Shown here: positions 8,490 to 48,544 of the stretch, piece after piece
How the letters are laid out: each line of letters opens with the position of its first letter
Position numbering within the stretch: position 1 is the first letter of the stretch
Source: Macrostomum lignano
Taxonomy: Eukaryota
DNA length: 64,000 nucleotides
Direction of reading: 5' to 3'
NCBI GenBank assembly: GCA_002269645.1
Contig: NIVC01000599.1
Location: 29,393 to 93,392, forward strand
The notes under the pieces: generated by a model
Databases searched by the model: none
The model's input: only the letters and a program-made list of their open reading frames with translations
Told to the model about the DNA's origin: nothing
Made by a program: the position numbers and the translations under genes

Positions 8490-9050
8490 TACAATAGCAT
8501 AGTCTGGATCATGCTAAATACAAAAACCCCTACCTAAACAAAAACTAAATAATTATAGGCCTAAATGCATGCCAAAAAGATTTGAGTACATACCAAAACT
8601 CTCAAATCTAGGCCAGCTTTATGATAAAAAATGATGTTTTTGTGTGATAATAAATGATCATTTTTGTGTTGCATAAAAGACCCTTTTTGGCCAATACTTT
8701 GGTTGATTTTTTTTCATTTATAAATAGGCCTACTAATTGCAATATAAAATTTATATATACAAAAATTGTTTAAATGCTTTAATTAGGCCTATAAATTAAA
8801 AAAACAGTAAGCATGAAGTTTATGCTTATAGATGAACTTTTCTTTATTTTTTAACTTTAATACCAACTTTTTTGCATGATTTTAGAAAATTGCACTCTAG
8901 TCTAGGTATGTATACACACAAATTTTAGGAGTAATTCATGCCAACTTTGCATGCCTAACTTTAGGGATGCAAGGCCAATATATACCTAATTTTTGGCATA
9001 TATTATATGATCTATAGTGTGATGTATAACTAGAAAAAATGATTAAACTT
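8490..9050. repeat. Old interspersed repeat; a diverged inverted copy lies at ~54340-54870
   Basis: Shared blocks, e.g. AAATGCATGCCAAAAA / TTTTTGGCATGCATTT and GCAAGGCCAATA / TATTGGCCTTGC, occur in colinear inverted order. Confidence 0.6.
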
Positions 9051-9545
9051 GGATAATAGGCAGTTGCACCTTGATCTCTTTAGGTAGACTTTAAAAAATC
9101 TAGCTAGGCCTAGGCCCTACCACAATCTTATTCCTTATATATATAGTATGAAATAGGTCCTTATCTAGTATTTAAGTCTTTAACTTAAAAGCTTCTTTGC
9201 ATTTAAAGTAAAATCTTCTTAACATTAGTCTTCTCTAGTTATAAAGTAGGCCCTAGGCTAGGTATGAAAAATATCTATAACTATTGACTAAATTCATATT
9301 CTGTCTAACTTCCCATAGCTATATTTATAGCTATAGTAAAAGATGCCACTTTTGATATGAACATTTTATTAAAAGGACTAAATAAATAGCAATTATATAT
9401 ATAATGTTATATAAGATGTACAAGATCACTAATTTGCTAACCTTTTTTATAGTCAGGGAGAGATAAGTAAATATCAAAAATGACATGTAGAAAAGTAATT
9501 CTATGGCTTTTTGTCCTATTTCAATTATTGCAACTAAGGGGGCCA

Positions 9546-9700
9546 TAGGCCATAGCCCAGTGGTAGCGCAGCTGCTCTGGTGTGCTAGCAACCCAGGCTC
9601 AATTCCAAGTGCAGTCACATTAATTTGGGGCTGAATTGGAATCTCGGCTTGGCTCTGCTCATGCAATTAATGGCCTTGAGAGCCAACCCCCCAAGGTGCA
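9546..9700 (+). mobile_element. Degenerate tRNA-derived SINE
   Basis: GGCCATAGCCCAGTGG (A-box-like) ... GGCTCAATTCC (B-box-like) with tRNA-like spacing. Confidence 0.4.
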
Positions 9701-10204
9701 GTGAAGTGTACATGCCTAGGCCCTAATAATAATAATAAGAATGATAATGATAAAGTTAGGGCTGCTGTACACTTCTGTATGAGTGTGTGCCTGCATATGT
9801 ATCCGCGTGCTTGTATGCCTACTCAGGGGAGTTGGCAGAATGGGCAGTAATGCCTCTCGCCAATTGTGTAGAGATGTTCCGAAATTTCGATTTCGATTTC
9901 GATTTTCCGAAATTCGGATTTTTTTATGTGAGGGTTCCCCGACAGATATTCGCGACAGATATTTTCTCCTTCAATCGGATAATTCAAACAAAAAATGAAT
10001 TTATGTTTCGGGATGCATTACTTACTCTGATGCCGTATTCAGCTTTAAAATTTTGTAGACAAAAATTTTATGTCTTAAAGAAAAAAATATTAGTACGAAT
10101 ACAAAGTGTGTCAAAACGAATTTTATCACACATTCCTTACAAAAAAATTCTCACGCCAAAGAACTTATGAAGTAACGGTAGCAATGAATTTTTTGTCAGT
10201 TTCT

Positions 10205-11030
10205 GACGCATGTCTCAACTTTGCAATGACACCTTAGACACATGTCCTACTTTTGTATTTCCTGGGATATCTGCTTCCAAAGTGTGCTTTCCGTGAGTCA
10301 TTCATCATCCGTACCAAGACCAACCAAAACTTTGACTTATCGCTCCGTCTCTATGCTTCAATCATTTGCTCTGAAACTTCTACCACTTCTTGACGCATGT
10401 CTCAGCTTTGCAGTGACACCTTAGACACATGTCCTACTTTTGTATTTCCCGGGATATCTGCTTCCAAAGTGTGCTTTCCGTGAGTCATTCATCATCCGTA
10501 CCAAGACCAACCAAAACTTTGACTTATCGCTCCGTCTCTATGCTTCAATCATTTGCTCTGAAACTTCTACCACTTCTTGACGCATGTCTCAGCTTTGCAG
10601 TGACACCTTAGACACATGTCCTACTTTTGTATTTCCCGGGATATCTGCTTCCAAACTGTGCTTTCCGTGAGTCATTCATCATCCGTACCAAGACCAACCA
10701 AAACTTTGACTTATCGCTCCGTCTCTATGCTTCAATCATTTGCTCTGAAACTTCTACCACTTCTTGACGCATGTCTCAGCTTTGCAGTGACACCTTAGAC
10801 ACATGTCCTACTTTTGTATTTCCCGGGATATCTGCTTCCAAAGTGTGCTTTCCGTGAGTCATTCATCATCCGTACCAAGACCAACCAAAACTTTGACTTA
10901 TCGCTCCGTCTCTATGCTTCAATCATTTGCTCTGAAACTTCTACCACTTCTTGACGCATGTCTCAGCTTTGCAGTGACACCTTAGACACATGTCTGACTT
11001 TTGTATTTCCCGGGATATCTGCTTCCAAAT
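10205..11030 (+). repeat. 187-bp tandem array in the left Foldback arm (~4.4 units)
   Basis: Units recur at 10242, 10429, 10616, 10803 and partially at 10990. Confidence 0.95.
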
Positions 11031-11181
11031 TGTGCGTTCCGTGGGTTATGTCTATATATCTCTCGCTGCGTCTTTTGCTCAAGCATACTACGAGTCTACG
11101 AGACACGCGATCAAACACATGATTGGTTTGCGTATTTCTCGAGATATTTTTTGAGCTCTTTGGTTTCAAAATGACACCTTT

Positions 11182-13985
11182 CCCAATCAAAAAGAAGTTG
11201 TCTTAAGACGTCTTAGAATAGTCTTAAGATGGCTAAAGACACCTCAAGACAATTTCAAGATATCTTCCACTTTGCTTCCACAAGCTATCCTGATTAAGTT
11301 GTCTTGAAGATGACTTGAAATTGACTTTTATGAGATGTCTTGTTGAAGACATCTTTAAGACATCACCTTAAAGACTAAAAATTTACATAAACAACTGTTT
11401 CTACTGTAAGTAGGAAGTTTCAGATACAAATTTATCTAGATCGTTAAAATCAATAAAAAATAAAACAAGCAACTATTGTGACATTTATCAAAAAATTTTG
11501 TTGTATTGTAGTCTGTGGAAGGTGTGCCTATTATTAAAAATCCTTTACGCTTTTGGAGTGCAATTATATGCAATTTTTTGTATTGAGTCGTTGCAAACTC
11601 TGAGACAAAGTTTAACTACAACAGTTTTGATTGGAGTAAATATATTTACAAAATTCTAAACAGCAAAGCATTAAAAAAGACTAAGTTGCAATATATATCG
11701 GTGATGCTTTTGTTAAAAACAGCTAAAATCAATATGGCGGAACGACATTTTTAAAAAGGACTAAAAGACAACCTTGTTCACCGTGAAGGCCGCCTAATTC
11801 TCGAACACTTGCTTCTATCTTTTGTAATAAGTTTCAATTTTTCATTGGCTGCTATAGCCTATATAGATTTCTGGTGTAAGCCCTACCCTAGATTTATCTT
11901 TACTTAATGCGATAATGTATTACTATTCGTAATTCGTGATGATACATCTACTATCCTCAAATTAAACCTTCCTAGTAGTATTTTTTACTAATTCTTCCTT
12001 GGATAGCTTCTAGGATTGTATTTCATATTCTAGTGCCAGGTGCCAGCAACAAACCCAGATTGGCCAGAAATGTTTTTATGCAATAGGCAATAGGGATGCT
12101 ATGTAACATCCTGACTTAAAAATTACAATTTTAAATTGGACCTTGGATGCAATGTTTTTTTAGTTAGGCCTACTGCATATCTATTGCTATGCCTAGCACT
12201 AGTAAGCACTAGTTAACTAATGCATAGTCATGTGTACATTTTAAGTTAGGCCTTAAAAGATTCCGGCATTAACTAGAGGCCCATGTACTAGGCCTAAAAC
12301 TAAAAATATATGTTTTATTTACTTCTAGCTTTTTAAAGTCAAAGTTTTATAGTTGTTGAATTGGCTTATTAGGCTATTTTGTTCTGTTGTAGGCCTCTTA
12401 GCCTTAGATAGGCCCTAGGCCTAGCTTCTTCCTTAAGCCTAAATAGTTTTTGTTTTGATTTTTATGTCAAAAGTAATAAATAATTTCCATGAGCCTAGGG
12501 TATAGCTAGGTTTATTTTTTATATGTAGAGTGTATATATGCACTTTTAATTTAAAATTGCACCCAGAAATTGAAAATTGCAATTTAAGGACAGTCTTATA
12601 ACCTGATTTTCTGTTAAACTTGAAGCCACATTTGCATTGCCCTAAATGGCTAAAATAAGAAAAATAAAAAATTGCACTTTGAGCCTTAAAATTACACTAT
12701 AAAAATGAGTATAGAGTGCACTTTTGTACCTTGTCTCTGGCAAAAAAAGAAAACCTTGGCCTATAGGCCTTTATATATTGCTTCCTCTTTGCCTTTATTA
12801 TTGGCTAATGGCATATATATGATGTTTTCAATATATCAATATTTTGAATATTAGGCCTAGTCATTAGTGCATTTTTCTTGGCTAGGCCAATGAAAATTTA
12901 AATAAAAAATAGATATAGCCTTATAATTTATTATTAGGCCTATATCACATTCAAAAATTGGATTAGGCCTAATAGAGAATAAATAGAGTTGGTATGCCTA
13001 GAAGTTTTATATAAAATTGATATTCTAATCTTTTTATTTTGCTTTGAGATTAGGCCCTAAGCTTTAGCCTATGTATTTAAGCCTAAGGCAAAGTTATTGT
13101 ATAATACACTTGTGTGAATATATAGTAGGGGCCTAGGCAATTTATTTATTAGATTTTTAATGTATATTAGTATAATAATCTATTATTTATTATTTTTTGT
13201 TTTTTTACTTATGAATTTCAAATTATTTCAGCCTAACAACCTATAAACTATAACCTTTATTAAACTTATCCTTTTCAGCCTTATCAAAACATGCTATCCA
13301 TCATAGTGGAAGCTAACCTGGATCTTGAATCTTCCTGGATTGAGCCAATTCTAAACTAGTAGTTGGCTAGCAAAGGATCAATTTACAGCAAGTTTTCCAC
13401 CAAGCAATGAGCAACTTGGTCATTATTGCATTAACCAAGTATTTCTATGCAATGACTGGGTATGATGCATTATAAAATTATACACTTGCACTTGAGTATT
13501 TTTGCATTTTTATTTAGTGTATTTTAACTTGTTTTTGATTCACCATTTTATTGCTTCTGTGACTTTTAAACTGTGCCTTTTATAAAATGAAAATATAAAT
13601 CATAAATTACATTGAACCATGTTTAGAAGCCTACTAAATAGCTTCTCTTTCATATCAATATTGCCTGAAACGAAACAAAAGAGTGCTGTAATATTTTTAG
13701 TCATTTTTCTTTTAAACAACTGTGATTGCAATGGCAACAGCATTTCTTAAATGATCTTGGGCAAGATGTCTTCTGCAAGTCATCTGGAAGATGTCTTTAA
13801 GTAGATTTTAAGATGTCTTGAAGATGTCTGAAGACGTCTTCAAGTTATCTCTAAGTTGTCTACAAGTGTTGCAAGGAGCCAATTTTTAGACCGAATTAAG
13901 TCAATTGTAAGATGTCTTGAAGACATCTTTCTGTCTTATGCAAGACATCTTTAAGACATAATTAAGCCAACTTTTTTTGATCGGG
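11182..13985. mobile_element. Nested non-autonomous CMC/EnSpm-like DNA transposon, 2.8 kb
   Basis: TIRs CCCAATCAAAAAGAAGTTG and CAACTTTTTTTGATCGGG, a 2-bp TSD (TT/TT), and many AAGAC(G/A)TCTT subterminal repeats at both ends around an AT-rich interior. Confidence 0.7.
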
Positions 13986-14210
13986 TTAGATAGAGTCAGC
14001 TAGCTTTTGTGTTATTCCTGAACAATGTCTGTTTCTTGGCGAATCCGGTGGCGAAAAGTATATTGTCGACATAAGTTTTTTGTAAAGTATTACAAGCAGT
14101 TTCTCGAAACAAAAAACAATAACTCATTAAGAACAACTGTATTTGTGTAAATGTCTTGTACTATGTATAGATTATTGCAGTTACTATCGTAGTTGAGGGG
14201 AAAGAACAAA

Positions 14211-14769
14211 TGGTCGTATGAATAAAGTGAGTAGTTGCTCAAACTCGGCGAGATTCTCAAATCAGTATGAATAAAATGAGTGCGTCCTCCTGAGCAAGTG
14301 CTCAAAATCAATTTCCCAAGAGTTACATGTAGTGCTCTCCCCGTGAGCAAATGCTCGGTGACTGAGTAGAGACTCGCTTCAGTATGAATAAACTCTGGTC
14401 ATAAACGATTGCAATTTGTCTTGAGATCTTGCTCAGCAAAAGTTGAGTCTCCTCTGTAGTAGACTCACTGGTTGAGCAGCATCCAGCCATGTCCCTAAGC
14501 GGCAAATAGCGTCTATGTCCCTACGCTATTGAACTCAAATTTATAGGCAACCCATAGGCTTTTTCGCACAAGTAACGAAAACCAGCGGTCGCACTTTACC
14601 TGTTACCGCCATACAAAAGTGGCCTATCTAGGGAATATAAGATCTATGATTCATATGAACATTGAGCAACTGCTCCAGATCAGAGCAGTTGCTCGAGTTC
14701 GAGCTTTTGCTCAATCTCAGAGTTTGAGGTGAAACTCGCCAGTTATTGCTCACTGTAGTCATACGGCCA
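14211..14769. mobile_element. Nested MITE (~560 bp) with imperfect TIRs
   Basis: TGGTCGTATGAATAAAGTGAG at the left end versus CTCACTGTAGTCATACGGCCA at the right, repeated GAGCA-N2-TGCTC palindromic motifs inside, and AAA on both flanks. Confidence 0.55.
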
Positions 14770-14824
14770 AAATAAAGCTAGGAAATTTTAGGAAATGTAA
14801 CTTTCATATAAACAAACATAACCG

Positions 14825-17795
14825 TCAGCTGTCTAAATTAATGCATGTGACACACACCTTGTTGTTCTGGTCTTGTTGTCGAGTCCAGCAAGATTTGTGA
14901 AACCAGAAGAGGCACGATGGGCACTCGATCTGCAGATTTTATGCGGTATAGCTATGCCTCATACGCTCGTATATACTTACATGAATTACCTTAGTGCGTC
15001 CAAAAAGTTCTTAGACACCCCTCCTATCTCTGCACATGTTCAATCGATTTTTATAAAAATTGACAAAAACATGTACCTATATGTAATGAATTCAGTGCTA
15101 AAGTTTCAGCTTAATCGGGTTGACATAGCAAAAGAAATTGATCGTTTCTAAGGTACACTAAGGTGTTAATTTTCAACGTAACTTACCCACTCAATTGTAC
15201 TCGTAGAACGATTTCGACCCCGCGGCCGGGGTTCTTCTAAATGGCAACCGTGGCATGTGTTTTGCTCTGATTTTTCGTCAAAATTGGTTATTGCTGTCTT
15301 TATAATGCCTCGAGCAACGGACAGCTTTGGCTGCACATTAGGTATAATAGTGCACCTACCAAGCAATAAATTTCTTCCAAAGAGCGAAACAAAAACGCCG
15401 CAGGAGTCGGAGTCTATTTGCTGCGTGCAAATCCGATGGGAAACTGCGAAGCATTCCCTCTGGGAGTTTTCAATGAGTGGGCCAAGACATTCGTCGACAT
15501 CTGACAATAGGAGTAGCGCGCTGAAACCGTAAAACGAATTTTATAGATGCAGAGATTTGCATAAGGTGTAATAAAATAATTTTAGGCTTGGTACATTCCT
15601 TACTTCCACTTTCTTGCTATTTCCTCCACTTCATTCTTTCTTCTTCCGCCAGTGCGCCTCATCGAGTCCAGTGAGTAGATTTTTTTCTCATCAAGAAGGA
15701 TTGCTACGAGCCAAAAATGGCTCGGCGACAACATTGGAATCAGAATTTTTGTTATTTTCTAATTGTTGGATAGTGGTAAGAACAAAATGGATTGTATCGT
15801 TTCTTTAATAATTAATATACGAGTAATTTGTATTTGCAATTGTACTTACGCTTCTTCCTGTCGCGTAGTTCTGCAAGGCTTCTTTTGTCGGAAGCAGAAG
15901 ATTGTTTGGGTTGTCAATGACTGCATAAAAGTCGCTTTGCTTCATGACAACAGCGTCTTCGATTCCGCTAGCCACCGCAGCCAAATAGCCGTATACAACC
16001 TAATATGTTACAGCATACGTGTATGGTTACAAGAATGTGAAACGTACTTAGGGAATTTACTCAGATTACACAAAATTACGCTCACGGAGTAATCCAACCA
16101 ACTAGATCCATCAAGAGTTGCTAGTTGATCATAAGTTACTATTGTGCCGTGAATATCTCGGAGAGTGACAAAATTAGGCTCCGGCTGTGTCGACTGCTGA
16201 TTCTGAAACTGTTGCTGCTGCCGTTCTGTCTGCTGCTGTTGCTGTTGTGGGGGCTGGTCATGTTGCTGTTTCTGAGACTGTTGCTGCTGCCGTTCTGTCT
16301 GCTGCTGTTGCTGTTGTGGGGGCTGGTCATGTTGCTGATTCTGAGACTGTTGCTGCTGCCGTTCTGTCTGCTGCTGTTGCTGTTGTGGGGGCTGGTCATG
16401 TTGCTGATTCTGAGAGTGATAAATTATTTTTACAAAGTTCCTCGTTGTATACTTCGCTCGTCTTCTATCCCACTGCTCCTGCGCTCCTTCTGGAGTCATG
16501 GAATCGTGCTTTCTCTTTCGAGGGCAGAAAAATGGTCGAGACTTCGTTTTGTGGGCGATGTTTGCTTCTTTGATTCTGTCATGAATGAATTCTGCGTTGG
16601 ATTTACAAAACATTGCGGGCGAAAGAGGCAGTTCCAGAGTTGATTTTATTTGTTTGATTATGGAAGCTAGGTAATTTAATTGCTCAGCAGAGTACATTAC
16701 AACTCGAAGTGGCTCGCAGCATCTTTCTCTCACAATTCCAGGCAAATATGGGTGTGAGTAATCACGTTTCAGTCCTTCCTGCATGCGAATCAATTCTATA
16801 AAAACATCTTTGTGCAGTTTCTCCTTCCTCCGAGAGCTTTTCAATACCCTTTTAAGGACATTTCTTGATTTGCAGGAGTCAAAATTCATCGCGAGAACAT
16901 GCATCATATGTTTCTTTTCAAGCATGAGTTTCCGATGGGCTTCTGTAACACCTTTGCAAGAGTCGATTTTCCTTTTTAACAAAATTTCTTCTGCTTGAGT
17001 CGTTCTCCTAAACGTTGGCGATTCAGCTTCTTTGTGGTTATAAGTTCCCTCTGCATAAACCTTCCAAACCCATCTTTCTGAACACGTGGGTTGTTCTTTC
17101 ATAATAAAAGTAAATTTGCGAAGGCACCCTTTAATTTTACACGCAGCCTTAACGGTCCAAAAATTGCTTTCCGCCTTCCGAGATCGAAGAGATTTAACGT
17201 GACAGTAACCTCTCATGCGTAGACAGCAAGTCGAGATTCTACGCAGTGCTTTACAGAGGGCTTCGTTTAGGTTGGATTTCGAAAAGGAAAATTTACGCGT
17301 ATTTTCTAGCTGCTTGAGGTCAACGGCTTTAATTTCTGCGGGTTCAAAATATATTTCTTGGGTATCTGTTTCTTGATCCAAAACTAAAAGGCTCTCTTTA
17401 GGAGGTGGTGTCTGGTGTCTCGACTCGTGCATATTATCTTCTTCTTCAATGCAAACTACCGTCCCAGAGCCTCCAGTTGAGGATGATGAGTTTTCAGTAT
17501 CTGATGGAGCCCCTGACGACTGTAAGGGTACATGTACATGTACTGGTGTTGGAGGTGAACTGGGTGGACTGGGTGCTTGATTGGAATCCCGTCGAATCCA
17601 ATTCCACATAAGCAATCGATTGCGAACTGTGTTGCGTAGATTGAGTCTCGCTGACAATAATAAATAAATTGCTCCTGGCGAACGATAGTCTGTTGGAATG
17701 CCATGTTTTTTAACAGCCTCCAAAACGGCGGAACTAATCTGGAAAGTAACCAACAAACGCACAGAATAAAATGCGCGTTTCTTTAAGTCTACCAT
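14825..17795 (-). CDS. NOF/MULE-like transposase derivative fused to a Ulp1 (C48) SUMO protease and a PHD finger; 5 exons, ~817 aa, DDE core apparently deleted
   Basis: Exons 17795-16086, 15999-15850, 15758-15604, 15520-15187 and 14929-14825 are all GT-AG with consistent phases (0,0,2,0). N-terminal region: WTVKAACKIKGC..F.F...VYAEGTYNH...VLKRVLK...LHKDVFIEL...PGIV...PLRVVMYSAEQL. Ulp1 motifs: LATLDGSSWLDYS|VVYGYL, ILIPM..SHFWLVAI..IYSLDS, QQIDSDSCGVF. PHD: CHGC...EW|IECPSCLFWFHKSC...CVTC. Confidence 0.85.
16195..16415 (-). repeat. In-frame 69-bp coding repeat x3 (QNQQHDQPPQQQQQQTERQQQQS)
   Basis: Period 69 (16221, 16290, 16359); forms the Gln-rich linker ahead of the Ulp1 domain. Confidence 0.9.
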
Positions 17796-18423
17796 CGATC
17801 CTACATGTGGTAGACGTAGAGGCTACCCATACGGCAGTCAGCAACACGATATGTTATTTAACTTACCTCTTTCTTCGATGGGTAACAAGAACACGCAATA
17901 AACAATGTAAAAAGCAAGACTATAAGCTTCATACTGAAGTAGAGAATATATACTATTTTCCAATAATTAGTTTTTATAAATTCACCACATTTACGCAGAC
18001 ATTGACAAACCAAAAAGGACAGAATTTTTTTGACAAGCGCGTGAACGATTCTGAAATTGAAAAACTTGACATTAACTTTGCATCCATATCCAAAGATCCA
18101 CAAAATACTGCTGCTGAATTTGCTATAAGAGGTGTGTACAGTTTCTTGCATTCCTAGAGTAATTTGCTTAAACGAGGACAGTTGGAATGTACAGCAACTT
18201 CTGTGTACAGTTGTCAGTTGCAGAGAAACAAACAGCATTGATTATAGGAATAGCGCAAATTAGATGAGTGATGACTCAACATACTTAAGGTACCGATCAA
18301 TGATAGCTAAAAAGTGCATTAGGAATTGACAAAACTTGCCAGTTGCAAAAATAAAGCATTAAAGACGTAGTATGAAGTCAAAGCCAGCAGACAATTGTTC
18401 TGACTGAAACTGCAAAGTGCATA

Positions 18424-20385
18424 GAAAGCACACTTTGGAAGCAGATATCCCGGGAAATGCAAAAGTCAGACATGTGTCTAAGGTGTCACTGCAAAGCTGA
18501 GACATGCGTCAAGAAGTGGTAGAAGTTTCAGAGCAAATGATTGAAGCATAGAGACGGAGCAATAAGTCAAAGTTTTGGTTGGTCTTGGTACGGATGATGA
18601 ATGACTCACGGAAAGCACACTTTGGAAGCAGATATCCCGGGAAATACAAAAGTCAGACATGTGTCTAAGGTGTCACTGCAAAGCTGAGACATGCGTCAAG
18701 AAGTGGTAGAAGTTTCAGAGCAAATGATTGAAGCATAGAGACGGAGCAATAAGTCAAAGTTTTGGTTGGTCTTGGTACGGATGATGAATGACTCACGGAA
18801 AGCACACTTTGGAAGCAGATATCCCGGGAAATACAAAAGTCAGACATGTGTCTAAGGTGTCACTGCAAAGCTGAGACATGCGTCAAGAAGTGGTAGAAGT
18901 TTCAGAGCAAATGATTGAAGCATAGAGACGGAGCGATAAGTCAAAGTTTTGGTTGGTCTTGGTACGGATGATGAATGACTCACGGAAAGCACACTTTGGA
19001 AGCAGATATCCCGGGAAATACAAAAGTCAGACATGTGTCTAAGGTGTCACTGCAAAGCTGAGACATGCGTCAAGAAGTGGTAGAAGTTTCAGAGCAAATG
19101 ATTGAAGCATAGAGACGGAGCGATAAGTCAAAGTTTTGGTTGGTCTTGGTACGAATGATGAATGACTCACGGAAAGCACACTTTGGAAGCAGATATCCCG
19201 GGAAATACAAAAGTAGGACATGTGTCTAAGGTGTCACTGCAAAGCTGAGACATGCGTCAAGAAGTGGTAGAAGTTTCAGAGCAAATGATTGAAGCATAGA
19301 GACGGAGCGATAAGTCAAAGTTTTGGTTGGTCTTGGTACGGATGATGAATGACTCACGGAAAGCACACTTTGGAAGCAGATATCCCGGGAAATACAAAAG
19401 TCAGACATGTGTCTAAGGTGTCACTGCAAAGCTGAGACATGCGTCAAGAAGTGGTAGAAGTTTCAGAGCAAATGATTGAAGCATAGAGACGGAGCGATAA
19501 GTCAAAGTTTTGGTTGGTCTTGGTACGGATGATGAATGACTCACGGAAAGCACACTTTGGAAGCAGATATCCCGGGAAATACAAAAGTCAGACATGTGTC
19601 TAAGGTGTCACTGCAAAGCTGAGACATGCGTCAAGAAGTGGTAGAAGTTTCAGAGCAAATGATTGAAGCATAGAGACGGAGCAATAAGTCAAAGTTTTGG
19701 TTGGTCTTGGTACGGATGATGAATGACTCACGGAAAGCACACTTTGGAAGCAGATATCCCGGGAAATACAAAAGTCAGACATGTGTCTAAGGTGTCACTG
19801 CAAAGCTGAGACATGCGTCAAGAAGTGGTAGAAGTTTCAGAGCAAATGATTGAAGCATAGAGACGGAGCGATAAGTCAAAGTTTTGGTTGGTCTTGGTAC
19901 GAATGATGAATGACTCACGGAAAGCACACTTTGGAAGCAGATATCCCGGGAAATACAAAAGTAGGACATGTGTCTAAGGTGTCACTGCAAAGCTGAGACA
20001 TGCGTCAAGAAGTGGTAGAAGTTTCAGAGCAAATGATTGAAGCATAGAGACGGAGCGATAAGTCAAAGTTTTGGTTGGTCTTGGTACGGATGATGAATGA
20101 CTCACGGAAAGCACACTTTGGAAGCAGATATCCCGGGAAATACAAAAGTAGGACATGTGTCTAAGGTGTCACTGCAAAGCTGAGACATGCGTCAAGAAGT
20201 GGTAGAAGTTTCAGAGCAAATGATTGAAGCATAGAGACGGAGCGATAAGTCAAAGTTTTGGTTGGTCTTGGTACGGATGATGAATGACTCACGGAAAGCA
20301 CACTTTGGAAGCAGATATCCCAGGAAATACAAAAGTAGGACATGTGTCTAAGGTGTCATTGCAAAGTTGAGACATGCGTCAGAAA
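18424..20385 (-). repeat. 187-bp tandem array in the right Foldback arm (~10.5 units), inverted relative to the left arm
   Basis: Reverse complement of the 10205-11030 unit with period 187 (18478 to 20161). Confidence 0.95.
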
Positions 20386-21598
20386 CTGACAAAAAATTCA
20401 TTGCTACCGTTACTTCATAAGTTCTTTGGCGTGAGAATTTTTTTGTAAGGAATGTGTGATAAAATTCGTTTTGACACACTTTGTATTCGTACTAATATTT
20501 TTTTCTTTAAGACATAAAATTTTTGTCTACAAAATTTTAAAGCTGAATACGGCGTCAGAGTAAGTAATGCATCCCGAAACATAAATTCATTTTTTGTTTG
20601 AATTATCCGTTTGAAGGAGAAAATATCTGTCGCGAATATCTGTCGGGGAACCCTCACATATTTTTTTAGAGCAAATTTCGATTTCGAAAAAATTTCGGAA
20701 GTCAAAATTTCGGAAGTGCCTACTTCCGAAATTTTTATCTAATTTTAGTTTTTTAGAACTTCGTTACTGTCTTTTATCGGTGATATTATACAGTTTTTAC
20801 ATGTAAAACTTTTTGAATTTGTTAAAACTGTTCCATGCATGTAGGACATGTAACATGGTAGTTTGTACATGTGGAACTGTAAATTTTCGTAAATTTTGTT
20901 GCACTTTAAAGCTGCAAAAGCGTCTGCTGATATATTGCATATTTTTCGCATTTTACAGTATATATATGTACATTTACCGTACATGTACATGCATTATCGT
21001 TTACACGATCTCAGTTATTGCTAGTCATGCAGTACTGATACATGTACATTTTAACTGTACATTTTATACATGTACAACTCAGTATACACCCTATACCCTA
21101 CCGCCTAGACGGATAAAGGCAGAGAAATTTGTTTTGTCTAGCAGGGAAAAGGCGCGCTTTGCTGCCGTGCTTTAATACCGTCTAGTAATATATGCAATAT
21201 ACGCGCCTTAGTCTTTCTTTTAAAGGCACTAGTTCAAATAAATTACTTAACATATTTACAGTATATGTAGTTTTCGCGTCGAAAAAAAAAATTTGCATTT
21301 AAAAGTGGCAATGAGGGATTCTACTTATTTAGTGGCCGAAAATAAACGAACTTCTGCTAAACATACATGTATTTTGTTTTGCATGAGCAGTAAATCGAAA
21401 GTAGAAAAGTGAGTGTCGGTTGTACTAAACTTTGTTTTTCTGAATTACGATTTCGGAAAATTTCGATTTCGATTTCGATTTCGACAGAAAATTCGCTTTC
21501 GGAACATCTCTACGACTACAATTGTGTGCCTATGTTGCTTAAAGTGTACCAGGGTGCATACAACCCCCCTGCCTCTAATAAAAAATCATTGCAACTAT

Positions 21599-21874
21599 CA
21601 TACATGTGCAACCCCCCTGATTTACACTGGCTATGCAACTTACTTTTTGACCAAAAATGCCACTTACCTGTGAAAGAAACCCTAAAGCAGAATTAATGCA
21701 ATTTTGGGTAAATGGCAAGAGTAACTATAACTGTCTTATAAGGGCTAAATGCCTCGTCATCTAATTAGTACTACATCTATTCTTTGGGTTTGGGCATTTT
21801 TGCAACTTACCCCTGGTCCTCCACAATTTACAGTGGCCAGATTGGCCAGGCTGGCCAGCAGTTGTGCATGTATG
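21599..21874 (+). mobile_element. hAT-type MITE (276 bp) carrying a 28S rDNA-derived core, copy 1
   Basis: TIRs CATACATGTGCAAC and GTTGTGCATGTATG, perfect 8-bp TSD GCAACTAT (21591-21598 and 21875-21882). Positions 21706-21769 match the conserved LSU rRNA segment at about 53/64. Confidence 0.85.
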
Positions 21875-21953
21875 GCAACTATTACATTTGAAAAAATAGA
21901 TAGTTTAGCTATATGATTGAATGGATTGTGCTGTCATATTATTGGATTAACAC

Positions 21954-22227
21954 CATACATGCGCAATAGTTGGCCGAGTCGGCCGATCTGGCCGACTGAT
22001 TTGGCGGCCAACCAAGGAAGTCGCAAAAATGCCCACCCAAAAAAATAACCAAGTAGTAGTACTAAGTAGCTGACGAGGCATTTTGGCCTTATAAGACAGT
22101 CATAGTTACTCCTGCCGATTACCCAAAGTTGCATTAATTTTGCTTTAAGTTTTTTTACATATAAGTCGCATTTTTTGTTAAAACTAAGTCGCACGGCCCA
22201 CCGAATTTCAGAGGTTGCGCATGTATG
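21954..22227 (-). mobile_element. hAT-type MITE (274 bp) carrying a 28S rDNA-derived core, copy 2, in opposite orientation
   Basis: TIRs CATACATGCGCAAT and GTTGCGCATGTATG, perfect 8-bp TSD ATTAACAC (21946-21953 and 22228-22235). The reverse complement of 22061-22124 matches the LSU segment at about 52/64. Confidence 0.85.
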
Positions 22228-22624
22228 ATTAACACCACTTATTAGTCAAAGAAGTAATCATGACTCATGAGACTTGTAGTCTAGGTTTCATTTTTGTCAT
22301 AAGCTTATGCCATGACTTAGGCCTATCAAATTTAATTTTGGCATCCTAAATTTAGACCTTAGCTAAGATGCCAAAGTAACATCTTAATTTCTATGAGCTG
22401 GATAGTCACATCAGTCATGTGATTGTCATGTGATTGATATCATATTTATTACTTTTTGGGATTCTTGTGATTTTAAGACTTCTATCAATTATCAAAGTCA
22501 AGTAATCCTATAAATATGGACATTTAAAATATTCAGGCTTATATATACATATGTATGTGTAAGTCAGGGTATACTTGTATAGACTTAGGTATAGATTTAT
22601 GTTTACTAATATCTAGACTTATGC

Positions 22625-28427: not shown

Positions 28428-31400
28428 TCATCGCATAGAGTGGGAAAAGTCAGAGATCGCCCTGCTGAGCAGTCGAATGCCCTCCGTAATAGTCGGAATC
28501 GTGCCGGACAGAAACTTGTTCCACACCGCCTTGTTGCTTTTAAACTGCTGGCCAAGCAGGTCTTCAAGTACGTACATCAGCACCTTGTTCAGCGTCTGCG
28601 GTTCATTGTTGGGTGGTTGAACTAGTTGGTGCATGACGATCTAGTAACAGTACGACATACCGTATCGGGCCTCTTGATACTCGGCAACTAAGAACGTCAA
28701 GAACTTCAACGGTTCCTGCCGAAACAGAATTGCATTGAAAATCTACTCTATCCACCAACTCACTATCTCAACCTACTCTACCTGCACCTACTCTTTCAAC
28801 CCCTACTTTTTCTACCAACCTTCTTTATCTACAAAACATACTCTGTCTATCAATTTACTCTATCAACCTGCTCTGTCTATCAATTTACTCTATCAACCTG
28901 CTCTGTCTATCAATTTACTCTATCAACCTGCTCTGTCTATCAATTTACTCTATCAACCTGCTCTGTCTATCAATTTACTCTATCAACCTGCTCTGTCTAT
29001 CAATTTACTCTATCAACCTGCTCTGTCTATCAATTTACTCTATCAACCTGCTCTGTCTATCAATTTACTCTATCAACCTGCTCTGTCTATCAATTTACTC
29101 TATCAACCTGCTCTGTATATCAACCTGCTCTGTCTATCAATTTACTCTATCAACCTGCTCTGTCTATCAATTTACTCTATCAACCTGCTCTGTCTATCAA
29201 TTTACTCTATCAACCTGCTCTGTCTATCAATTTACTCTACCAACCTGCTCTGTATATCAACCTGCTCTGTCTATCAATTTACTCTATCAACCTGCTCTGT
29301 CTATCAATTTACTCTATCAACCTGCTCTGTCTATCAACCTGCTCTGTCTATCAATTTACTCTATCAACCTGCTCTGTCTATCAACCTGCTCTGTCTATCA
29401 ATTTACTCTATCAACCTGCTCTGTCTATCAATTTACTCTATCAACCTGCTCTGTCTATCAATTTACTCTATCAACCTGCTCTGTCTATCAATTTACTCTA
29501 TCAACCTGCTCTGTATATCAACCTGCTCTGTCTATCAATTTACTCTATCAACCTGCTCTGTCTATCAATTTACTCTATCAACCTGCTCTGTCTATCAATT
29601 TACTCTATCAACCTGCTCTGTCTATCAACCTGCTCTGTCTATCAATTTACTCTATCAACCTGCTCTGTCTATCAATTTACTCTATCAACCTGCTCTGTCT
29701 ATCAATTTACTCTATCAACCTGCTCTGTCTATCAATTTACTCTATCAACCTGCTCTGTCTATCAACCTGCTCTGTCTATCAATTTACTCTATCAACCTGC
29801 TCTGTCTATCAATTTACTCTATCAACCTGCTCTGTCTATCAACCTACTCTATCTACCAACCCTTTTTGTCTACCAACTTACTCTATCTATTAACCTACTC
29901 TACCAAGCTTTTCTTTCTATCAACCTACTCTATCTACCAACCTACTCTGTCTATCAACCTACTCTATCTACCAACCTGCTTTTTCTATCAATCTACTTTA
30001 TCCATCAACCTACTTTATCTATCAACCTACTCTGTCTACCAACTTACTCTGTCTATCAACCTACTCTATCTATCTATCAACCCACTGTCTACCAACCTAC
30101 TCACGTCTACCAACCTACTCTGCCTATCAACCTACTTTGTCTACCAACCTACTCACAGCAAAATTGTCCGTCCGGATGCCCCGTCGCCCATGCGAGCGGC
30201 CAATCTCGGTCAGCAGCTCCTCAGAGGACTGTCGGTCGCGCAAGTCGGCGATGACCGAGTCCAGCATGTTCACCACCCTACGGCCGTGTGTCCTCAACGC
30301 CGGGTCGCCGCGCAGCTGGTCGAGTGGCCTCTGGCGAAACTTCGAGAACAGCTCCTGCTCTTCGGGGTACAGCTCGAACAGTCTGGGAGGATTGAGTTTG
30401 AGACAGTGCCGGAGACGAATTGGTTTTGTTAGTCAAGAATCAGTACAGCGGCAAATTAGGAATAGTTGTAACCATGCAGCTCTGATTAAATTAGTCATCG
30501 GGTTGAAGGTCCCTAAGGTGCTGAATATCCAGAAGGCCCCAAAGGTCTCGAAAGTCCTGAAGGTCCCGTAGGTGCTGAACGTACTGAGGTTTTTGTTCTT
30601 GGGGTGGTAGCCTAGTGGTTAGAGCATCGGACTCACGATTGAAAGATCGGGGGTTCGATTCACGATCACACTAGGAACAATCTGTGTCCTTGAGTAAGAC
30701 ATTTAACTCTGCATTACTTTAATCCACCCAGCTGTAAAATGGGTGCCAGCATTAGCTGGGGTAATTGAGGATGTGTGTGGCGACCCCCCCCCCAGTCCTT
30801 GGACTGAACAGCCGTAGTCGCAACCTTCAGATGCGCCGCGCAATAGCTGCGGCTGAGCTGTTGGTTGCACATCTGCCCAATTGGGGCAGGTGTAATCAAT
30901 TATTATTATCGAGTAAGGGGAGTGGATTGGCTGCATGGGCGAGGTCACGGAGTACAAAATGGGTGTTCCCCGAACTGCCTCTCCATGCATGTGCATGTCG
31001 AAGGTCGAAAAGGTTCCAAAGGTCTTGATAGAAAGTCCCAAAGATCCCAAAGGTTGCGAAGTTCCCGAAGGTCGATGATAAATGATTTGAACTTTTAGAT
31101 GGTATGCAGATGGTAAAAGTCTATCAACCTGGAATCGTTAGTTAATAAATCGACTATCGCTGGGCAGTTTTGAATTTGAATTGTTCACGAATCTCAACCC
31201 GGAAAATTTGTTTAATTTGATTGTTTGTTAATTTGTTTGAGACTCGTTTTCGGTAGATAACTGCTCTATCAGTTATAGAACTACTGATGACTTCACAGTA
31301 AACCTCTGGGAAGCTATCTAGGATCTATAGAAAATCTGCTAAGTGACTCCATCTGCTCTAAAACTACTCTAAACCTACTCTATCTACTCAAAACCTACTT

Positions 31401-35344: not shown

Positions 35345-36565
35345 ACAAGTTTCGGGTTGGGGGGGGGACAAGTTTCGGGTTGGGGGGCAAGTCTCGGGTT
35401 GGGGGGCAAGTCTCGGGTTTGAGGGGGGGCAAGTTTCGGGTTGGGGGGGGGGCAAGTCTCGGGTTGGGGGGGCAAGTCTCGGGTTGGGGGGCAAGTCTCG
35501 GGTTGGGGGGCAAGTCTCGGGTTGGGGGGCAATTCTCGGGTTGGGGGGGACAAGTCTCGGGTTGGGGGTTGGGGGGGGCAAGTCTCGGGTTGGGGGGGCA
35601 AGTCTCGGGTTGGGGGTTGGGGGGGGGGCAAGTCTCGGGTTGGGGGGGGCAAGTCTCGGGTTACTTACTTACTTACTTACTACTGACGGGGGGCGCAGGC
35701 GCCGCGAATAGGCCGCGAGGCCCCTATCGCAACCCCAAGGTAAAAGAGCAAAGTCTCGGGTTGGGGGGGCAAGTCTCGGGTTGGGGGGCAAGTCTCGGGT
35801 TGGGGGGGCAAGTCTCGGGTTGGGGGGGGGCAAGTCTCGGGTTGGGGGGGCAAGTCTCGGGTTGGGGGGCAAGTCTCGGGTTGGGGGCAAGTCTCGGGTT
35901 GGGGGCAAGTTTCGGGTTGGGGGGGACAAGTCTCGGGTTGGGGGGCAAGTCTCGGGTTGGGGGGCAAGTCTCGGGTTGGGGGCAAGTTTCGGGTTGGGGG
36001 GGACAAGTCTCGGGTTGGGGGGCAAGTCTCGGGTTGGGGGGCAAGTCTCGGGTTGGGGGGCAAGTCTCGGGTTGGGGGGGGCAAGTCTCGGGTTGGGGGG
36101 GCAAGTCTCGGGTTGGGGGGCAAGTCTCGGGTTGGGGGGCAAGTCTCGGGTTGGGGGCAAGTCTCGGGTTGGGGGGCAAGTCTCGGGTTGGGGGGGGCAA
36201 GTCTCGGGTTGGGGGGGGCAAGTCTCGGGTTGGGGGGCAAGTCTCGGGTTGGGGGGGCAAGTCTCGGGTTGGGGGGCATGCAAGTCTCGGGTTGGGGGGC
36301 AAGTCTCGGGTTGGGGGGGCAAGTCTCGGGTTGGGGGGGGGCAAGTCTCGGGTTGGGGGGCAAGTCTCGGGTTGGGGGCAAGTCTCGGGTTGGGGGGCAA
36401 GTCTCGGGTTGGGGGGCAAGTCTCGGGTTGGGGGGGCAAGTCTCGGGTTGGGGGGGCAAGTCTCGGGTTGGGGGGGGCAAGTCTCGGGTTGGGGGGCAAG
36501 TCTCGGGTTGGGGGGGCAAGTCTCGGGTTGGGGGGGCAAGTCTCGAATTGGGGGGCAAGTGTCGG
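35345..36565 (+). repeat. G-rich minisatellite (CAAGTCTCGGGTTG5-9)n, array 1
   Basis: About 55 units of 18-22 bp differing in G-run length. Confidence 0.97.
35661..35750 (-). mobile_element. 5'-truncated non-LTR retroelement 3' end with a (TAAG)n tail, inserted in the G-rich array
   Basis: Minus strand reads ...GGCCTATTCGCGGCGCCTGCGCCCCCCGTCAG-TAG-(TAAG)n-TAA. It is flanked by AAGTCTCGGG at 35651-35660 and 35751-35760. Confidence 0.7.
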
Positions 36566-37104
36566 GCTGGGAGGAATCGAAGCCCCATCAATCAGCTCTA
36601 GACCTTAGCAGCAGAATCCCCAGAAGCAGTACACAACAGCAATTTAGATTGAGCAGCTTGTACTTTGCTTTATCTTAGAAATTTTTTATTCTCCAAATTC
36701 GTACAAACCAAGACGTAGATGCCAGAAATTATATCGACCAGAAATTAGCAGACAGATGCTGCCTCATGACGTGGATTTGATGGACACTCGTGACAGAGAC
36801 ATTTGACAGCGCGAAATTTCATTTTTTTCAATTTATCGGAAATTCATCGCGACTGCGTGGGTGCTTAGCAATAAAACTAGATTTATCTTTCGACCAATAT
36901 AAATTCAAGAAATTTTAAAATCGGTCAGACATGAGGCAAAACCTGCTCAAGTTCACAGAAACAGTCTAAACTGCTTGAGTGCCACGTTGTACAGGAAGAA
37001 ATCTGTTTTTTAAGCACAAAAGCTCACAGCATCTTGTTTTTCTAAAGAGATATGAAGATGAGGTTTCTTAAGAAATCAGTTTACAGAGTGCTACTGTGCT
37101 TTGA

Positions 37105-38621: not shown

Positions 38622-41600
38622 TCAGTCAATCTCAACCATGGCCACCGCCGGGGCACCCTGCAGCAGACGTGATTGACAGTCCCTCCCACAGCCGCTCCTC
38701 GTTGCTGGCCCGGCGGCCTCCTCCGTCTCGACAAATTCCTCGCCGTCGTCATCCTCGCCGTTGACATTCTCGCCGTTGCCTAGGTCGTCGCCGTCGTTAG
38801 CTTCGCGGCAGAGACAGCGGCGCCAGCGCAGCGAGTCAACCAGCCGGGCTCGAAAGCTGCGCATCACGGCGCAGTAGACGATGGGGTTGGCGCAGGAGTT
38901 CACGGTGACCAGGCAGACTCCGATGAGCTGCAGGGTTGAGTTGTACTCGTAGCGCACCACGCCCAGGTGGCCCAGCAGGTAGTGCAGGCAGTCGTAGCTC
39001 AAGCTGGCCACGAAGATGCAGGCGATCACCGCGGCCGACTTCGTGAGCTCCGAGGCGGCCCGCTGGATGAGGCGCGGCCGGCCGCTGGCGTTGGTGACGG
39101 TTCTGGTGCCGGCGCTGCTGACCCGGCGGCTGAGCTGGCAGATGATGCGCGAGTAGAGGCAAGCCAGCACCACCGCAGGTGCCAGGTAGACCAGGGCCAG
39201 CCAGAGAAAGCCGTACACCTGTGCATTGCGGCGCGGTCAGGGGTAGGGGTAGCTATGTGCTCCAATCAATTCTATGGAAGCCAATTTACTCTTAAAACTT
39301 GAATCTTTGCAAAATTTGCCTAAAAAACACAAATTATTCAAGCTTCTTTTTCTCGATAAACGTGTGACTGAACCTACAACGAAACATGTACTTGCTTCAT
39401 TTGTACTTCAGAAGTGCAGAAGGTGATGTATGGAGGAGAATTGGGTGCAAGATGGAACTACAAAGAAACTTTTTTAAGATTTTAGCACTTTTCACCTCAG
39501 ACATGCGCACTTTTACGAAGAGCATTTCTAGCGTCTGGATTTTCAGTCGTCGTATTTTCGCGGAAGGCTAGCCAATCAGGTGCCTCCGCGGCGAGAGACG
39601 ATTGGACTGGCCCAAACGAGTGAGAAAGAAGGCGGAAGGCTAGCCAATCAGGTGCCTCCGCGGCGAGAGACATGATTGTACTGGCCCAAACGAAAGAGGA
39701 AGAAGGCGGAAGGCTAGCCAATCAGGTGCCTCCGCGGCAAGAGACATGATTGTACTGGACCAAATGAGAGAGAAAGAAGGCGGAAGGCTAGCCAATCAGG
39801 TGCCTCCGCGGCGAGAGACATGATTAGTCGATTGTACTGGCCCAAACGAGAGAGAAAGACGAAAAGACGCCAGCCAATGAAAATGAAAACGAGAAAAATA
39901 AAATGAAGAACGACAGCTTAAGACGGAGGGGGGCAGACCAGAAGGAACCAGTGGCAGTGAGTCGGATAGCGCACGGGTCGGGGCAAGGGCATTGTGAGGC
40001 GCAGCTCACAACACAATGTCCTAAGATAATGAAGGCATGAGCTACAGGTGTTATTACTTGAGAACTGTCTCTGATCTTCAATATTTAGACCTGTTTGCAT
40101 TCCAAATATGACTTGGAGCAACTGTTGCGGTATTTTAAGAAAGCTAATTTCCTTTCCAGCCACAGCTCTGCGAGGTTTCCCAGCCTATCCTTTACTAACA
40201 CCCGACACCTGCGTGATATGGATTAGCGGAACTAATTAAGTACAAACTAAGGTACAGGTACGGCCTCAGGCCGGAAATCATCAACGTTCGCTATTTACGT
40301 AGTAAGGCTCGGAGTTCGATACTCGTACTTACTCAGTAAAATATGCGATACAATTAAAGTGCATTCAAGAGATGCCAGAAGGTTTTTTGCTTTTATTAAA
40401 GATCGTTGCGCGTCCTCTAGGGTTTAAGGTTTCCATTGTTGGTATGATTGGATCAGAGAGACCACAGTTTTCACAATTCAATCTAAACTGGTGGATCTCT
40501 ATACCTTTCAGGCCGATGGTGCAGGTGCCGCAGGCACTCATTTTGGCGCCGCAGGCACTCATTTTAGCGCCTTACGAGCGTGGACACTTATTTTAGCGCT
40601 GCAGACACCCATTTTGGCACCGAAGACATTCATTTTGGCGCCGCAGGCACTCATTTTGGCGCCGCAGGCACTCATTTTGGCGCCGCAGACATTCATTTTG
40701 GCGCCGCAGGCACTCATTTTGGCGCCGCAGGCACTCATTTTGGCGCCGCAGACACTCATTTTAGCGCCTTACGAGCGTGGACACTTTTTTTTGGCGCCGC
40801 AGACACTCATTTTGGCACCAAAGACACACATTTTGGCGCCACAGCCACTAATTTTAGTGCCGCATTCAGGCACTCATTTTGGCGCCGCAGGCACTCATTT
40901 TGGCGCCGCAGGCACTCATTTTGGAGCCGCATCTCTAAAGGGGTTGGTTAGAGTGTCGGACTCACGTTTGAAGGTCGGGGGTTCGATTCCCAATCCCACT
41001 GGAACAATTTGTGTCCTGAGTATGACACTTAACTCTGCATTGCTTCAGTTTATCCAGCTGTAAAATGGGTGCCAGCATTAGCGTGATAATTGAGGGTGTG
41101 TGTGGCACCATTGTACTTCAGTTGCCCATGCACTCAGGGTGTACAGCAGCGGCCCGGACTTTCTCATTGACAGCATGCATGTACACCCTGCGCCTAATTA
41201 GAGCCTGTTAACCCGACTGTTAGTCGCCAAGCTCTCTCACCTTGAACACGGTCTTCACGGAGATCTCGCCAGTACAGTTGTTCGTCGCCGGAGTGTACGT
41301 GACTGAGAAAACGTCCACGGCGTTGACCAGCAGCGAGTAGCCGTGCAGCAGGGCGATGCAGATTGCCGCCTGCCTGGCGCCGAGCAGTTTGTACTCCACA
41401 GGCCGGCACACCGCCCAGTACCTGTCCGCCGCGATCAGCAGCAGGTTCTGCACGCTGGAGAACACCGTGCACCAGAAGAAGAACTGGCTGTCGATTACAT
41501 GGCAGAGCACGAAGCCCAGAGCCCTGCTCACGGTGGGGTTCTGCTCCGGCTTCAGCAGCAGAGCCAGGGTGAAGCCGGAGACGGCCAGGTCCAGCAGCGT

Positions 41601-41747
41601 CTGATGCAGCATGAGGCTGGACGCGAACTTGGACCGAGGGTAGCGATGCCGGAGCAGGGTGGCGGCCACCAGGGAGTTGCCAGTCAGGCCCAGCAACGAC
41701 AGGCAACCGAGAAGCCACTGCACAAGGATGGGCAGGTTCGATTCCAT
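38622..41747 (-). CDS. Class A (rhodopsin-like) peptide-type GPCR, 2 exons, ~367 aa
   Basis: Exons 41747-41241 and 39218-38622, phase 0. Motifs GLTGNSLV (TM1), QTLLDL (TM2), LCHV..., AADRYWAVCRP (DRY), LAPAVVLACLYSRI (TM5), and NSCANPIVY (NPxxY). Confidence 0.9.
39561..39850 (+). repeat. ~73-bp tandem repeat x4 with CCAAT motifs, in the GPCR intron
   Basis: CGGAAGGCTAGCCAATCAGGTGCCTCCGCGG starts at 39561, 39633, 39707 and 39781. Confidence 0.9.
40525..40930 (+). repeat. 21-bp minisatellite GCAGGCACTCATTTTGGCGCC x~16, in the GPCR intron
   Basis: Period 21 with variants; each intact unit contains TTTTGGCGC. Confidence 0.93.
40940..41110 (+). mobile_element. tRNA-derived SINE, copy 2 (truncated)
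   Basis: GGGGGTTCGATTCCC B box and TTTGTGTCCTGAGTATGACACTTAACTCTGC core, homologous to 30601. Confidence 0.8.
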
Positions 41748-42124: not shown

Positions 42125-43150
42125 CGGGTTGGGGGGGGGGGCAAGTCTCGGGTTGGGGGGGGGCAAGTCTCGGGTTGGGGGGATGCTAGTCTCGGGTTGG
42201 GGGGCAAGTCTCGGGTTGGGGGGGAAAGTCTCGGGTTGGGGGGCATGCAAGTCTCGGGTTGGGGGGGAAAGTCTCGGGTTGGGGGCATGCAAGTCTCGGG
42301 TTGGGGGCATGCTAGTCTCGGGTTGGGGGCATGCAAGTCTCGGGTGGGGGCATGCAAGTCTCGGGTTGGGGGGCATGCAAGTCTCGGGTTGGGGGGGAAA
42401 GTCTCGGGTTGGGGGCATGCAAGTCTCGGGTTGGGGGCATGCTAGTCTCGGGTTGGGGGCATGCAAGTCTCGGGTGGGGGGCATGCAAGTCTCGGGTTGG
42501 GGGGCATGCAAGTCTCGGGTTGGGGGGGAAAGTCTCGGGTGGGGGGCATGCAAGTCTCGGGTTGGGGGGCATGCAAGTCTCGGGTTGGGGGGAAAGTCTC
42601 GGGTTGGGGGCATGCAAGTCTCGGGTTGGGGGCATGCTAGTCTCGGGTTGGGGGCATGCAAGTCTCGGGTGGGGGGCATGCAAGTCTCGGGTTGGGGGCA
42701 TGCAAGTCTCGGGTTGGGGGGGAAAGTCTCGGGTGGGGGGCATGCAAGTCTCGGGTTGGGGGCATGCAAGTCTCGGGTTGGGGGGGAAAGTCTCGGGTTG
42801 GGGGCATGCAAGTCTCGGGTGGGGGGCATGCAAGTTTCGGGTGGGGGGCATGCAAGTCTCGGGTTGGGGGCATGCAAGTCTCGGGTGGGGGGCATGCAAG
42901 TCTCGGGTTGGGGGCATGCAAGTCTCGGGTGGGGGGCATGCAAGTTTCGGGTGGGGGCATGCAAGTCTCGGGTTGGGGGCATGCAAGTCTCGGGTGGGGG
43001 CATGCAAGTCTCGGGTTGGGGGCATGCAAGTCTCGGGTGGGGGGCATGCAAGTCTCGGGTGGGGGGCATGCAAGTTTCGGGTGGGGGGCATGCAAGTCTC
43101 GGGTGGGGGGCATGCAAGTCTCGGGTTGGGGGGGGAACTCTCGGGGGGGG
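42125..43150 (+). repeat. G-rich minisatellite array 2, variant (CATGCAAGTCTCGGG(TT/T)G5-7)n
   Basis: Same core as array 1 with an added CATG; CTA and GAAA sub-variants. Confidence 0.97.
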
Positions 43151-48460: not shown

Positions 48461-48544
48461 CCAGAGAAAAAGTAGCTAGTGCAACAATTTCCTTAGCTTT
48501 ATAGTGGCTCCATTTTGTTTGGCATGACACCTCTTTTATATTTA

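Follow-up and report, generated by a model that had tools for sequence, protein, structure and literature searches.

The window analysed here, a 64-kb stretch of DNA from the flatworm Macrostomum lignano, contains two elements with short inverted ends, MITE1 and MITE2, which are inserted ahead of the Golgi pH regulator (GPHR) gene, upstream by approximately 1.3-1.9 kb. The open reading frame (ORF) of this gene is found about 1.3 kb downstream of the elements, and its product shares 99% identity with a protein of Macrostomum lignano. The window also holds a third element with these ends, MITE3, and a relative of the core of MITE1 and MITE2 which is nested in an intron (Table 1). Direct reading confirmed the preliminary description: two TIR elements of about 275 bp face opposite ways, and a separate, perfect 8-bp target site duplication (TSD) flanks each of them.

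Table 1. Elements, their 8-bp duplications and the 28S-like sequences found in the window.
Feature	Position	Strand	Description and basis
MITE1 left TSD copy GCAACTAT	21591-21598	.	direct reading
MITE1	21599-21874	+	276 bp; direct reading; absent from homeolog L001
28S-like block, MITE1	21706-21769	+	53/64 to LSU consensus; Rfam, BLAST and position counts
MITE1 right TSD copy GCAACTAT	21875-21882	.	direct reading
MITE2 left TSD copy ATTAACAC	21946-21953	.	direct reading
MITE2	21954-22227	-	274 bp; direct reading; absent from homeolog L001
28S-like block, MITE2	22061-22124	-	52/64 to LSU consensus; BLAST and position counts
MITE2 right TSD copy ATTAACAC	22228-22235	.	direct reading
Core relative, 68 nt	46469-46536	-	in 183-nt intron 46429-46611 of GHITM / Bax-inhibitor-family gene
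MITE3	50672-50843	+	172 bp; left end CATACATGCGCAAC, motif GCGACTTAC
MITE3 TSD TTTTAGTA	50664-50671 and 50844-50851	.	perfect 8 bp

Structure, insertion history and genomic setting of the elements

MITE1 is bounded by the 14-nt ends CATACATGTGCAAC and GTTGTGCATGTATG (the right end reads CATACATGCACAAC as reverse complement) and MITE2 by CATACATGCGCAAT and GTTGCGCATGTATG, the latter being CATACATGCGCAAC as reverse complement. Aligned over their whole length, the two copies are 76.7% identical. The inverted ends measure 13-14 nt in elements of 276, 274 and 172 bp (MITE1, MITE2 and MITE3, respectively), and 13 matches to the end motif with at most two mismatches are present in the window, compared with 3.6 expected. 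Copies of a subterminal motif, GC(G/A/C)ACTTA, are found in both larger elements: MITE1 possesses three of the form GC(A/C)ACTTA, as well as three GGCC repeats spaced 9 nt apart near its right end, and MITE2 possesses GCGACTT(A/C) motifs. Where the two copies differ in their ends and subterminal motifs, CG has mostly changed to TG or CA. MITE1 has a single CpG while MITE2 has 14 (the observed/expected ratio across the whole window is 0.69), a contrast which hints at methylation-driven decay in one of the sublineages. The longest ORF within the elements is 86 aa (MITE2), and a comparison with 5.8 billion proteins gave no relatives for it. There is no transposase domain among the ORFs of the 64-kb window, and for a candidate partner end, TATACATGCGCAAC at 52854, a matching second end was not found. 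MITE1 and MITE2 together form a long imperfect hairpin, which explains a sub-threshold Rfam match to MIR7723; as this match is the inverted pair of elements, it was rejected as a miRNA gene.

MITE3 differs at its right terminus, which ends in the variant ...GTTGCGCCCAAGCATG, and its interior is a near-perfect hairpin (DNA fold -77.6 kcal/mol, z -18.6). Sub-threshold Rfam matches to mir-249 and mir-96 correspond to this hairpin and were likewise rejected as miRNA genes. With MITE3 included, perfect 8-bp duplications were found three times. The family is sampled in the 64 kb by three elements, two of them full copies and one a same-end relative, plus one core relic. No further copies were present in approximately 42 kb of additional M. 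lignano sequence (L001 and L003, described below), pattern scans of viral contigs, bacterial and archaeal genomes and JGI metagenomes were all empty, and nothing was found when the 86-aa MITE2 ORF was used as a protein query for copies hidden in spurious protein calls.

M. lignano became polyploid recently and has three subgenomes (bioRxiv 10.1101/2023.04.19.537444). Among the loci of the GPHR protein cluster, NIVC01000599.1 (L002, assembly GCA_002269645.1) matches window 13531-35679 at 100% identity. The homeologous GPHR locus was found on NIVC01000019.1 (L001), where aligned blocks are 93-96% identical to the window. Neither element is present there: GCAACTAT occurs as a single copy at 8674-8681 and ATTAACAC as a single copy at 8733-8740, in the sequence ATCATT-GCAACTAT-TAGATAGTTTAGC...TTATTGG-ATTAACAC-CAATTATTAGTC. 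As both sites are empty in the homeolog, the insertions took place after the homeologs diverged and the 8-bp duplications are genuine. MITE1 and MITE2 are genuine, recent insertions, and the proposal that they inserted independently is borne out by the single 8-mer at each unoccupied site. The flanks are only a few percent apart while the elements are 23% apart, which indicates that the divergence of MITE1 from MITE2 is older than the insertions and that the copies represent two already-diverged sublineages, both still mobile. The two insertions, independent and from different sublineages, are separated by a spacer of just 79 bp in inverted orientation near the GPHR promoter. Such a close pair suggests an insertion hot spot at this place. 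A third GPHR-related locus, NIVC01000856.1 (L003) 10001-10195, carries no more of the gene than its final 64 codons and has no counterpart of the region in which the MITEs are inserted.

Several other features of the region were recorded. A stretch of about 12.6 kb (approximately 9007-21584), which ends some 14 bp short of MITE1, is absent from the homeolog on L001. It spans two inverted arms (9925-11049 and 19536-20660) of 1125 nt each, 99% complementary and partly made of a 187-bp tandem unit, and has the appearance of a large inserted segment with long inverted termini. The arms enclose about 8.5 kb, including a 595-aa glutamine-rich ORF (16008-17795, minus strand) in which no Pfam domain was found. 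Minisatellite arrays are very dense throughout the window (59 Tandem Repeats Finder rows; examples are 28835-30154, 35346-36571, 42135-43133 and 48531-50102), and many of the long ORFs in the mechanical list for the window are translated minisatellite arrays. A rhodopsin-type GPCR gene at 38622-41747 on the minus strand consists of two exons with clear GTGAGA...CAG splice sites, and its 2-kb intron is filled with repeats. Neither the spliced GHITM and GPCR models nor ten ATG-to-stop ORFs of the window were present in the protein collection searched, which suggests that neither gene has been annotated in the public records covered there. A search of representatives with the GPCR exon retrieved only relatives of at most 56% identity, and the element is absent from the loci of these relatives in other assemblies.

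The 28S-like block and its relatives

MITE1 and MITE2 both carry in their interior a block resembling large subunit rRNA. As a reference for it we used the Rfam LSU_rRNA_eukarya consensus (positions ~2244-2307, aligned without gaps). The identities of the preliminary description, 53 and 52 of 64 positions, were reproduced against this consensus, as was its 23-nt exact run, which lies at 21747-21769 in MITE1. Rfam aligned 113 nt (21659-21771) with model positions 2200-2310 at 32.7 bits (E 6e-6), which is below the gathering score of 50, a full-gene threshold, as expected for a short fragment. BLAST of the blocks gave E values of 1e-13 to 1e-8, with exact runs of 23 nt in MITE1 and 25 nt in the intron relative. 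The approximately 47 nt which Rfam aligned upstream of the 64-nt block score barely above shuffled sequences (P 0.03-0.06), so the secure extent of the similarity is 64-68 nt. C28G and other changes in the block disrupt helix pairs marked in the Rfam alignment, which indicates that the rRNA-like fold was not kept. The corresponding region of 28S is near-universal among eukaryotes, and the downstream half of the block has the eukaryote-specific version of the LSU sequence. We rejected an origin from bacterial or organellar LSU, both on account of this eukaryotic nuclear downstream half and because LSU_rRNA_eukarya was the best member of its Rfam clan. On the strength of these sequence comparisons, a nuclear 28S origin of the block is supported, and with it the earlier reading that the block spans the target shared by R2, I-PpoI and Pokey. 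This site in 28S is a known target of several rDNA-specific elements (PMC10946416, PMC4912750).

The central 113 nt of MITE1 and MITE2 are 85.6% identical while the flanks are 68.6% identical (Fisher P 0.0015, for two copies), and the difference persists when CpG sites are removed (P 0.011). The conserved zone extends beyond the 28S block, as it takes in the ~47 nt upstream, which are not clearly 28S-like and are 82% identical between the copies. The suggestion that the core is more conserved than the rest of the element thus holds for the centre as a whole, but the zone exceeds the block and only two copies are compared; with two sequences, exchange of ends or centres between the sublineages could equally have produced the pattern. 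The block is absent from MITE3. This element is mobile without it, so the block is neither family-wide nor required for mobility, and it can be regarded as a trait of MITE1 and MITE2 but not of all elements with the same ends.

The core relative in the GHITM intron matches 28S at 25/25 of its first positions and then at 23/39 (41% divergence). Such uneven conservation is not what uniform neutral decay would predict. The intron block has six derived states and both bordering bases in common with the MITE cores, and BLAST similarity between the intron block and the MITE core ends exactly at 68 nt, with no MITE ends or flanks around it. We also considered whether the intron block could be a snoRNA. 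This was rejected, as the strand of the host gene corresponds to sense 28S and there are no flanking C/D or H/ACA boxes.

The cut-site variant and the origin of the block

At the cleavage centre the blocks of MITE1 and MITE2 both read CTGTCTTATAAGG, where the 28S consensus reads CTCTCTTAAGGTA. In a gapped view this difference resolves into a gain of TA inside TTAA, a loss of TA 4 nt downstream and one or two substitutions. The changes common to both blocks are G12A, C28G, the TA gain and the TA loss, while private changes are scattered; position 41, the R2 junction, differs between the copies (T versus A). The shared changes are consistent with a single ancestor, and a variant passed on by one ancestor is not independent evidence for a decoy. 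The cluster of mismatches reported at the cleavage centre is therefore present as a shared variant, but it reflects about three events and not six independent changes. When ancestral changes are counted as events, 3/5 fall inside the 15-bp I-PpoI site (P 0.088), and the clustering of changes in any 9-nt window has P 0.13-0.29.

The preliminary description had further proposed that the recognition flanks are retained and that the block is a bindable but uncleavable decoy. I-PpoI, an enzyme of a slime mould, recognises only 15 bp, and six of these 15 bases differ in both copies. The recognised bases themselves are thus altered, no flanks are left for I-PpoI to recognise, and the term "bindable" is inapplicable for this enzyme. 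For R2 the flanks of the insertion point are mostly retained (21-23/25 upstream and 21-23/23 downstream), which is suggestive only. R2 nicking is positioned via flanking contacts, which makes "uncleavable" an assumption. Taken together with inheritance from one ancestor, the event count and the lack of a block in MITE3, the decoy proposal is unsupported.

We consider it probable that the block is passenger rDNA captured by a non-autonomous cut-and-paste transposon. MITE1 and MITE2 would then be two diverged sublineages of one such family, mobilized by a transposase encoded elsewhere which probably recognises the 14-nt ends (consensus CATACATGCGCAAC) together with subterminal motifs of the GCGACTTA type. 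This transposase would excise the element and reinsert it through staggered cuts 8 bp apart, and both insertions upstream of GPHR followed the divergence of the homeologous chromosomes, as the empty sites show. A piece of an rRNA gene, perhaps of a unit that had been repaired imprecisely, would have been copied a single time into the common ancestor of the two sublineages and carried along ever since; most plausibly it served to fill a gap when an internally deleted element was repaired. The rearrangement of TTAAGGTA to TTATAAGG would likewise have arisen once, before the sublineages split. A function as an rDNA mimic is not required to account for the observations. Two results count against the passenger origin. 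A pure passenger need not be better conserved than its surroundings, as the centre of the elements is, and uniform neutral decay mispredicts the perfect 25 positions of the intron block beside its strongly diverged remainder.

These two results would be easier to understand if selection kept the block as a functional mimic of rDNA or rRNA, either for binding of the R2 protein or a nucleolar protein, or as a shield against silencing, given that the host cannot afford small RNAs directed against its 28S. We find such a function very unlikely. There are just two copies with a common ancestor, the conserved zone extends into upstream sequence which is not clearly 28S-like, and MITE3 moves without the block. 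The three blocks are also inconsistent in what they preserve, MITE1 retaining the 3' part and the intron copy the 5' part; the I-PpoI site is destroyed, the enzyme in any case being that of a slime mould, and binding is purely hypothetical. Besides the conserved centre and the intron relative with its perfect 25-mer, a mimic would fit the observation that the best-kept parts, in one copy or another, are the upstream 25 nt and the downstream 23 nt around the R2 insertion point, and R2 elements were reported in Platyhelminthes (PMC12247875). The more specific proposition of a selected mimic of the most heavily targeted 28S site in a transposon lineage of this neopolyploid flatworm, acting in docking, as a decoy or through small-RNA self-mimicry, with the module retained in at least one host intron, is in our opinion highly improbable.

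The remaining explanations concern where the block came from. The donor rDNA unit could have been cut at TTAA / GGTAGC and misrepaired, in which case the variant TTATAAGGGC would predate the capture; the cutter might have been an R2-type nick, a homing-type endonuclease or an excising transposon which targets TA or TTAA. Such a scar, which would bear on the origin of the block and not on its present function, is unlikely. The gain of TA in TTAA, the loss of TA 4 nt on and the variable position 41 are of the kind of small indels left by end joining, and the site is one that several rDNA-specific elements target, but clustering counted by events is weak for the predefined 15-nt site as well as for any 9-nt window. 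It is also conceivable, though quite unlikely, that a 68-nt module, TTT-GGGTAAAC...TTAGT-A, exists as an independent dispersed sequence, for example as part of another repeat family, and was acquired separately by the ancestor of the MITEs and by the GHITM intron. The derived states and flanking bases which the intron copy has in common with the MITE cores, without any MITE flanks or ends, and the abrupt stop of similarity at 68 nt speak for a module of this kind. On the other hand, there is one orphan block only, the intron is short and its flanks could have been deleted or decayed, and should TTT also precede this sequence in the host 28S, some of the evidence from shared derived states would be lost. 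Finally, the probability that the resemblance is due to chance or is an assembly artefact, and the block not derived from rDNA at all, is negligible. The Rfam score below the gathering threshold, as for any short fragment, would allow it, but exact runs of 23 and 25 nt with E values of 1e-13 to 5e-9 in 128 kb searched, the eukaryote-specific downstream half, the clean duplications, the empty homeologous sites and the long-read assembly all oppose it. The BLAST runs and the empty sites effectively refute such a reading. Passenger rDNA thus stays our preferred explanation, and the conserved centre and the intron 25-mer are two loose ends which justify a genome-wide study.

Superfamily and comparison with known elements

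The elements had been labelled as hAT-type, which is not established. The hAT-typical terminal motif is YARNG, while the element ends begin with CATAC and fall outside this motif at positions 3 and 5. The duplicated sequences GCAACTAT, ATTAACAC and TTTTAGTA fit the hAT target preference nTnnnnAn at 4/6 key positions, in AT-rich DNA. Duplications of 8 bp are also made by P-type elements, for example the zebrafish P-like Pdre, which has 13-bp TIRs (PMC7776569). As the 8-bp duplication fits hAT and P alike and the CATAC ends do not fit YARNG, we leave the superfamily open.

The hAT MITEs of the Mar family from Drosophila willistoni (PMC3517528) are similar to the M. lignano elements in being short and non-coding, in their short TIRs and 8-bp TSD, and in insertion polymorphism between related loci. 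They differ from them in that the M. lignano ends are CATAC and not YARNG, and in that a hAT transposase partner is missing among the window ORFs. With derivatives of the P superfamily, such as Drosophila P and zebrafish Pdre (PMC7776569), the likeness consists of 8-bp duplications, short ends starting with CAT and separate subterminal motifs. No THAP9-like partner was found for the M. lignano elements, which sets them apart from P elements. The reverse complement of their subterminal motif, (G)TAAGTYGC, recalls the THAP site of the P transposase, TTAAGTG, a likeness of 5-6 nt only. P elements prefer GC-rich target sites, while those of the M. lignano elements are AT-rich.

Searching the literature for the element ends and the variant core as text strings returned nothing relevant. 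Parts derived from rDNA are known in 5S-type SINEs, in SINE28 (28S) and in Pokey/mPok (spacer repeats), as listed in a 2024 review (PMC10946416); an inverted-repeat DNA transposon with 28S coding sequence is absent from the list of that review. The M. lignano MITEs add one example to the short list of mobile elements which carry a piece of an rRNA gene. The family was still moving after M. lignano, a model species for transgenesis and regeneration, had recently duplicated its genome, and an active transposase of this worm could therefore be traced through the element ends. Should the block prove to be selected, the family would offer an uncommon example of one transposon imitating the target site of others that are specific for rDNA.

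One comparison is with Pokey/mPok of Daphnia, a piggyBac element (PMC4912750, PMC10946416). It is also a DNA transposon family with MITE derivatives and with sequence derived from rDNA, and the same stretch of 28S is involved. However, Pokey inserts into TTAA of 28S with TTAA duplications and its rDNA part originates from the intergenic spacer, while the M. lignano elements are situated outside rDNA, make 8-bp duplications and contain 28S coding sequence internally. SINE28 of mammals and the 5S-derived SINEs (PMC10946416, Table 2) similarly include a fragment of an rRNA gene in their mobile body, but they are retroposons without TIRs, whereas the carrier in M. lignano is a cut-and-paste element. 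Pack-type elements (PMC8903248) are, like those described here, non-autonomous TIR elements which spread host DNA taken up between their ends. They are mostly larger, are known from plants and carry protein-coding fragments, while in this flatworm the cargo is a 64-nt piece of rDNA.
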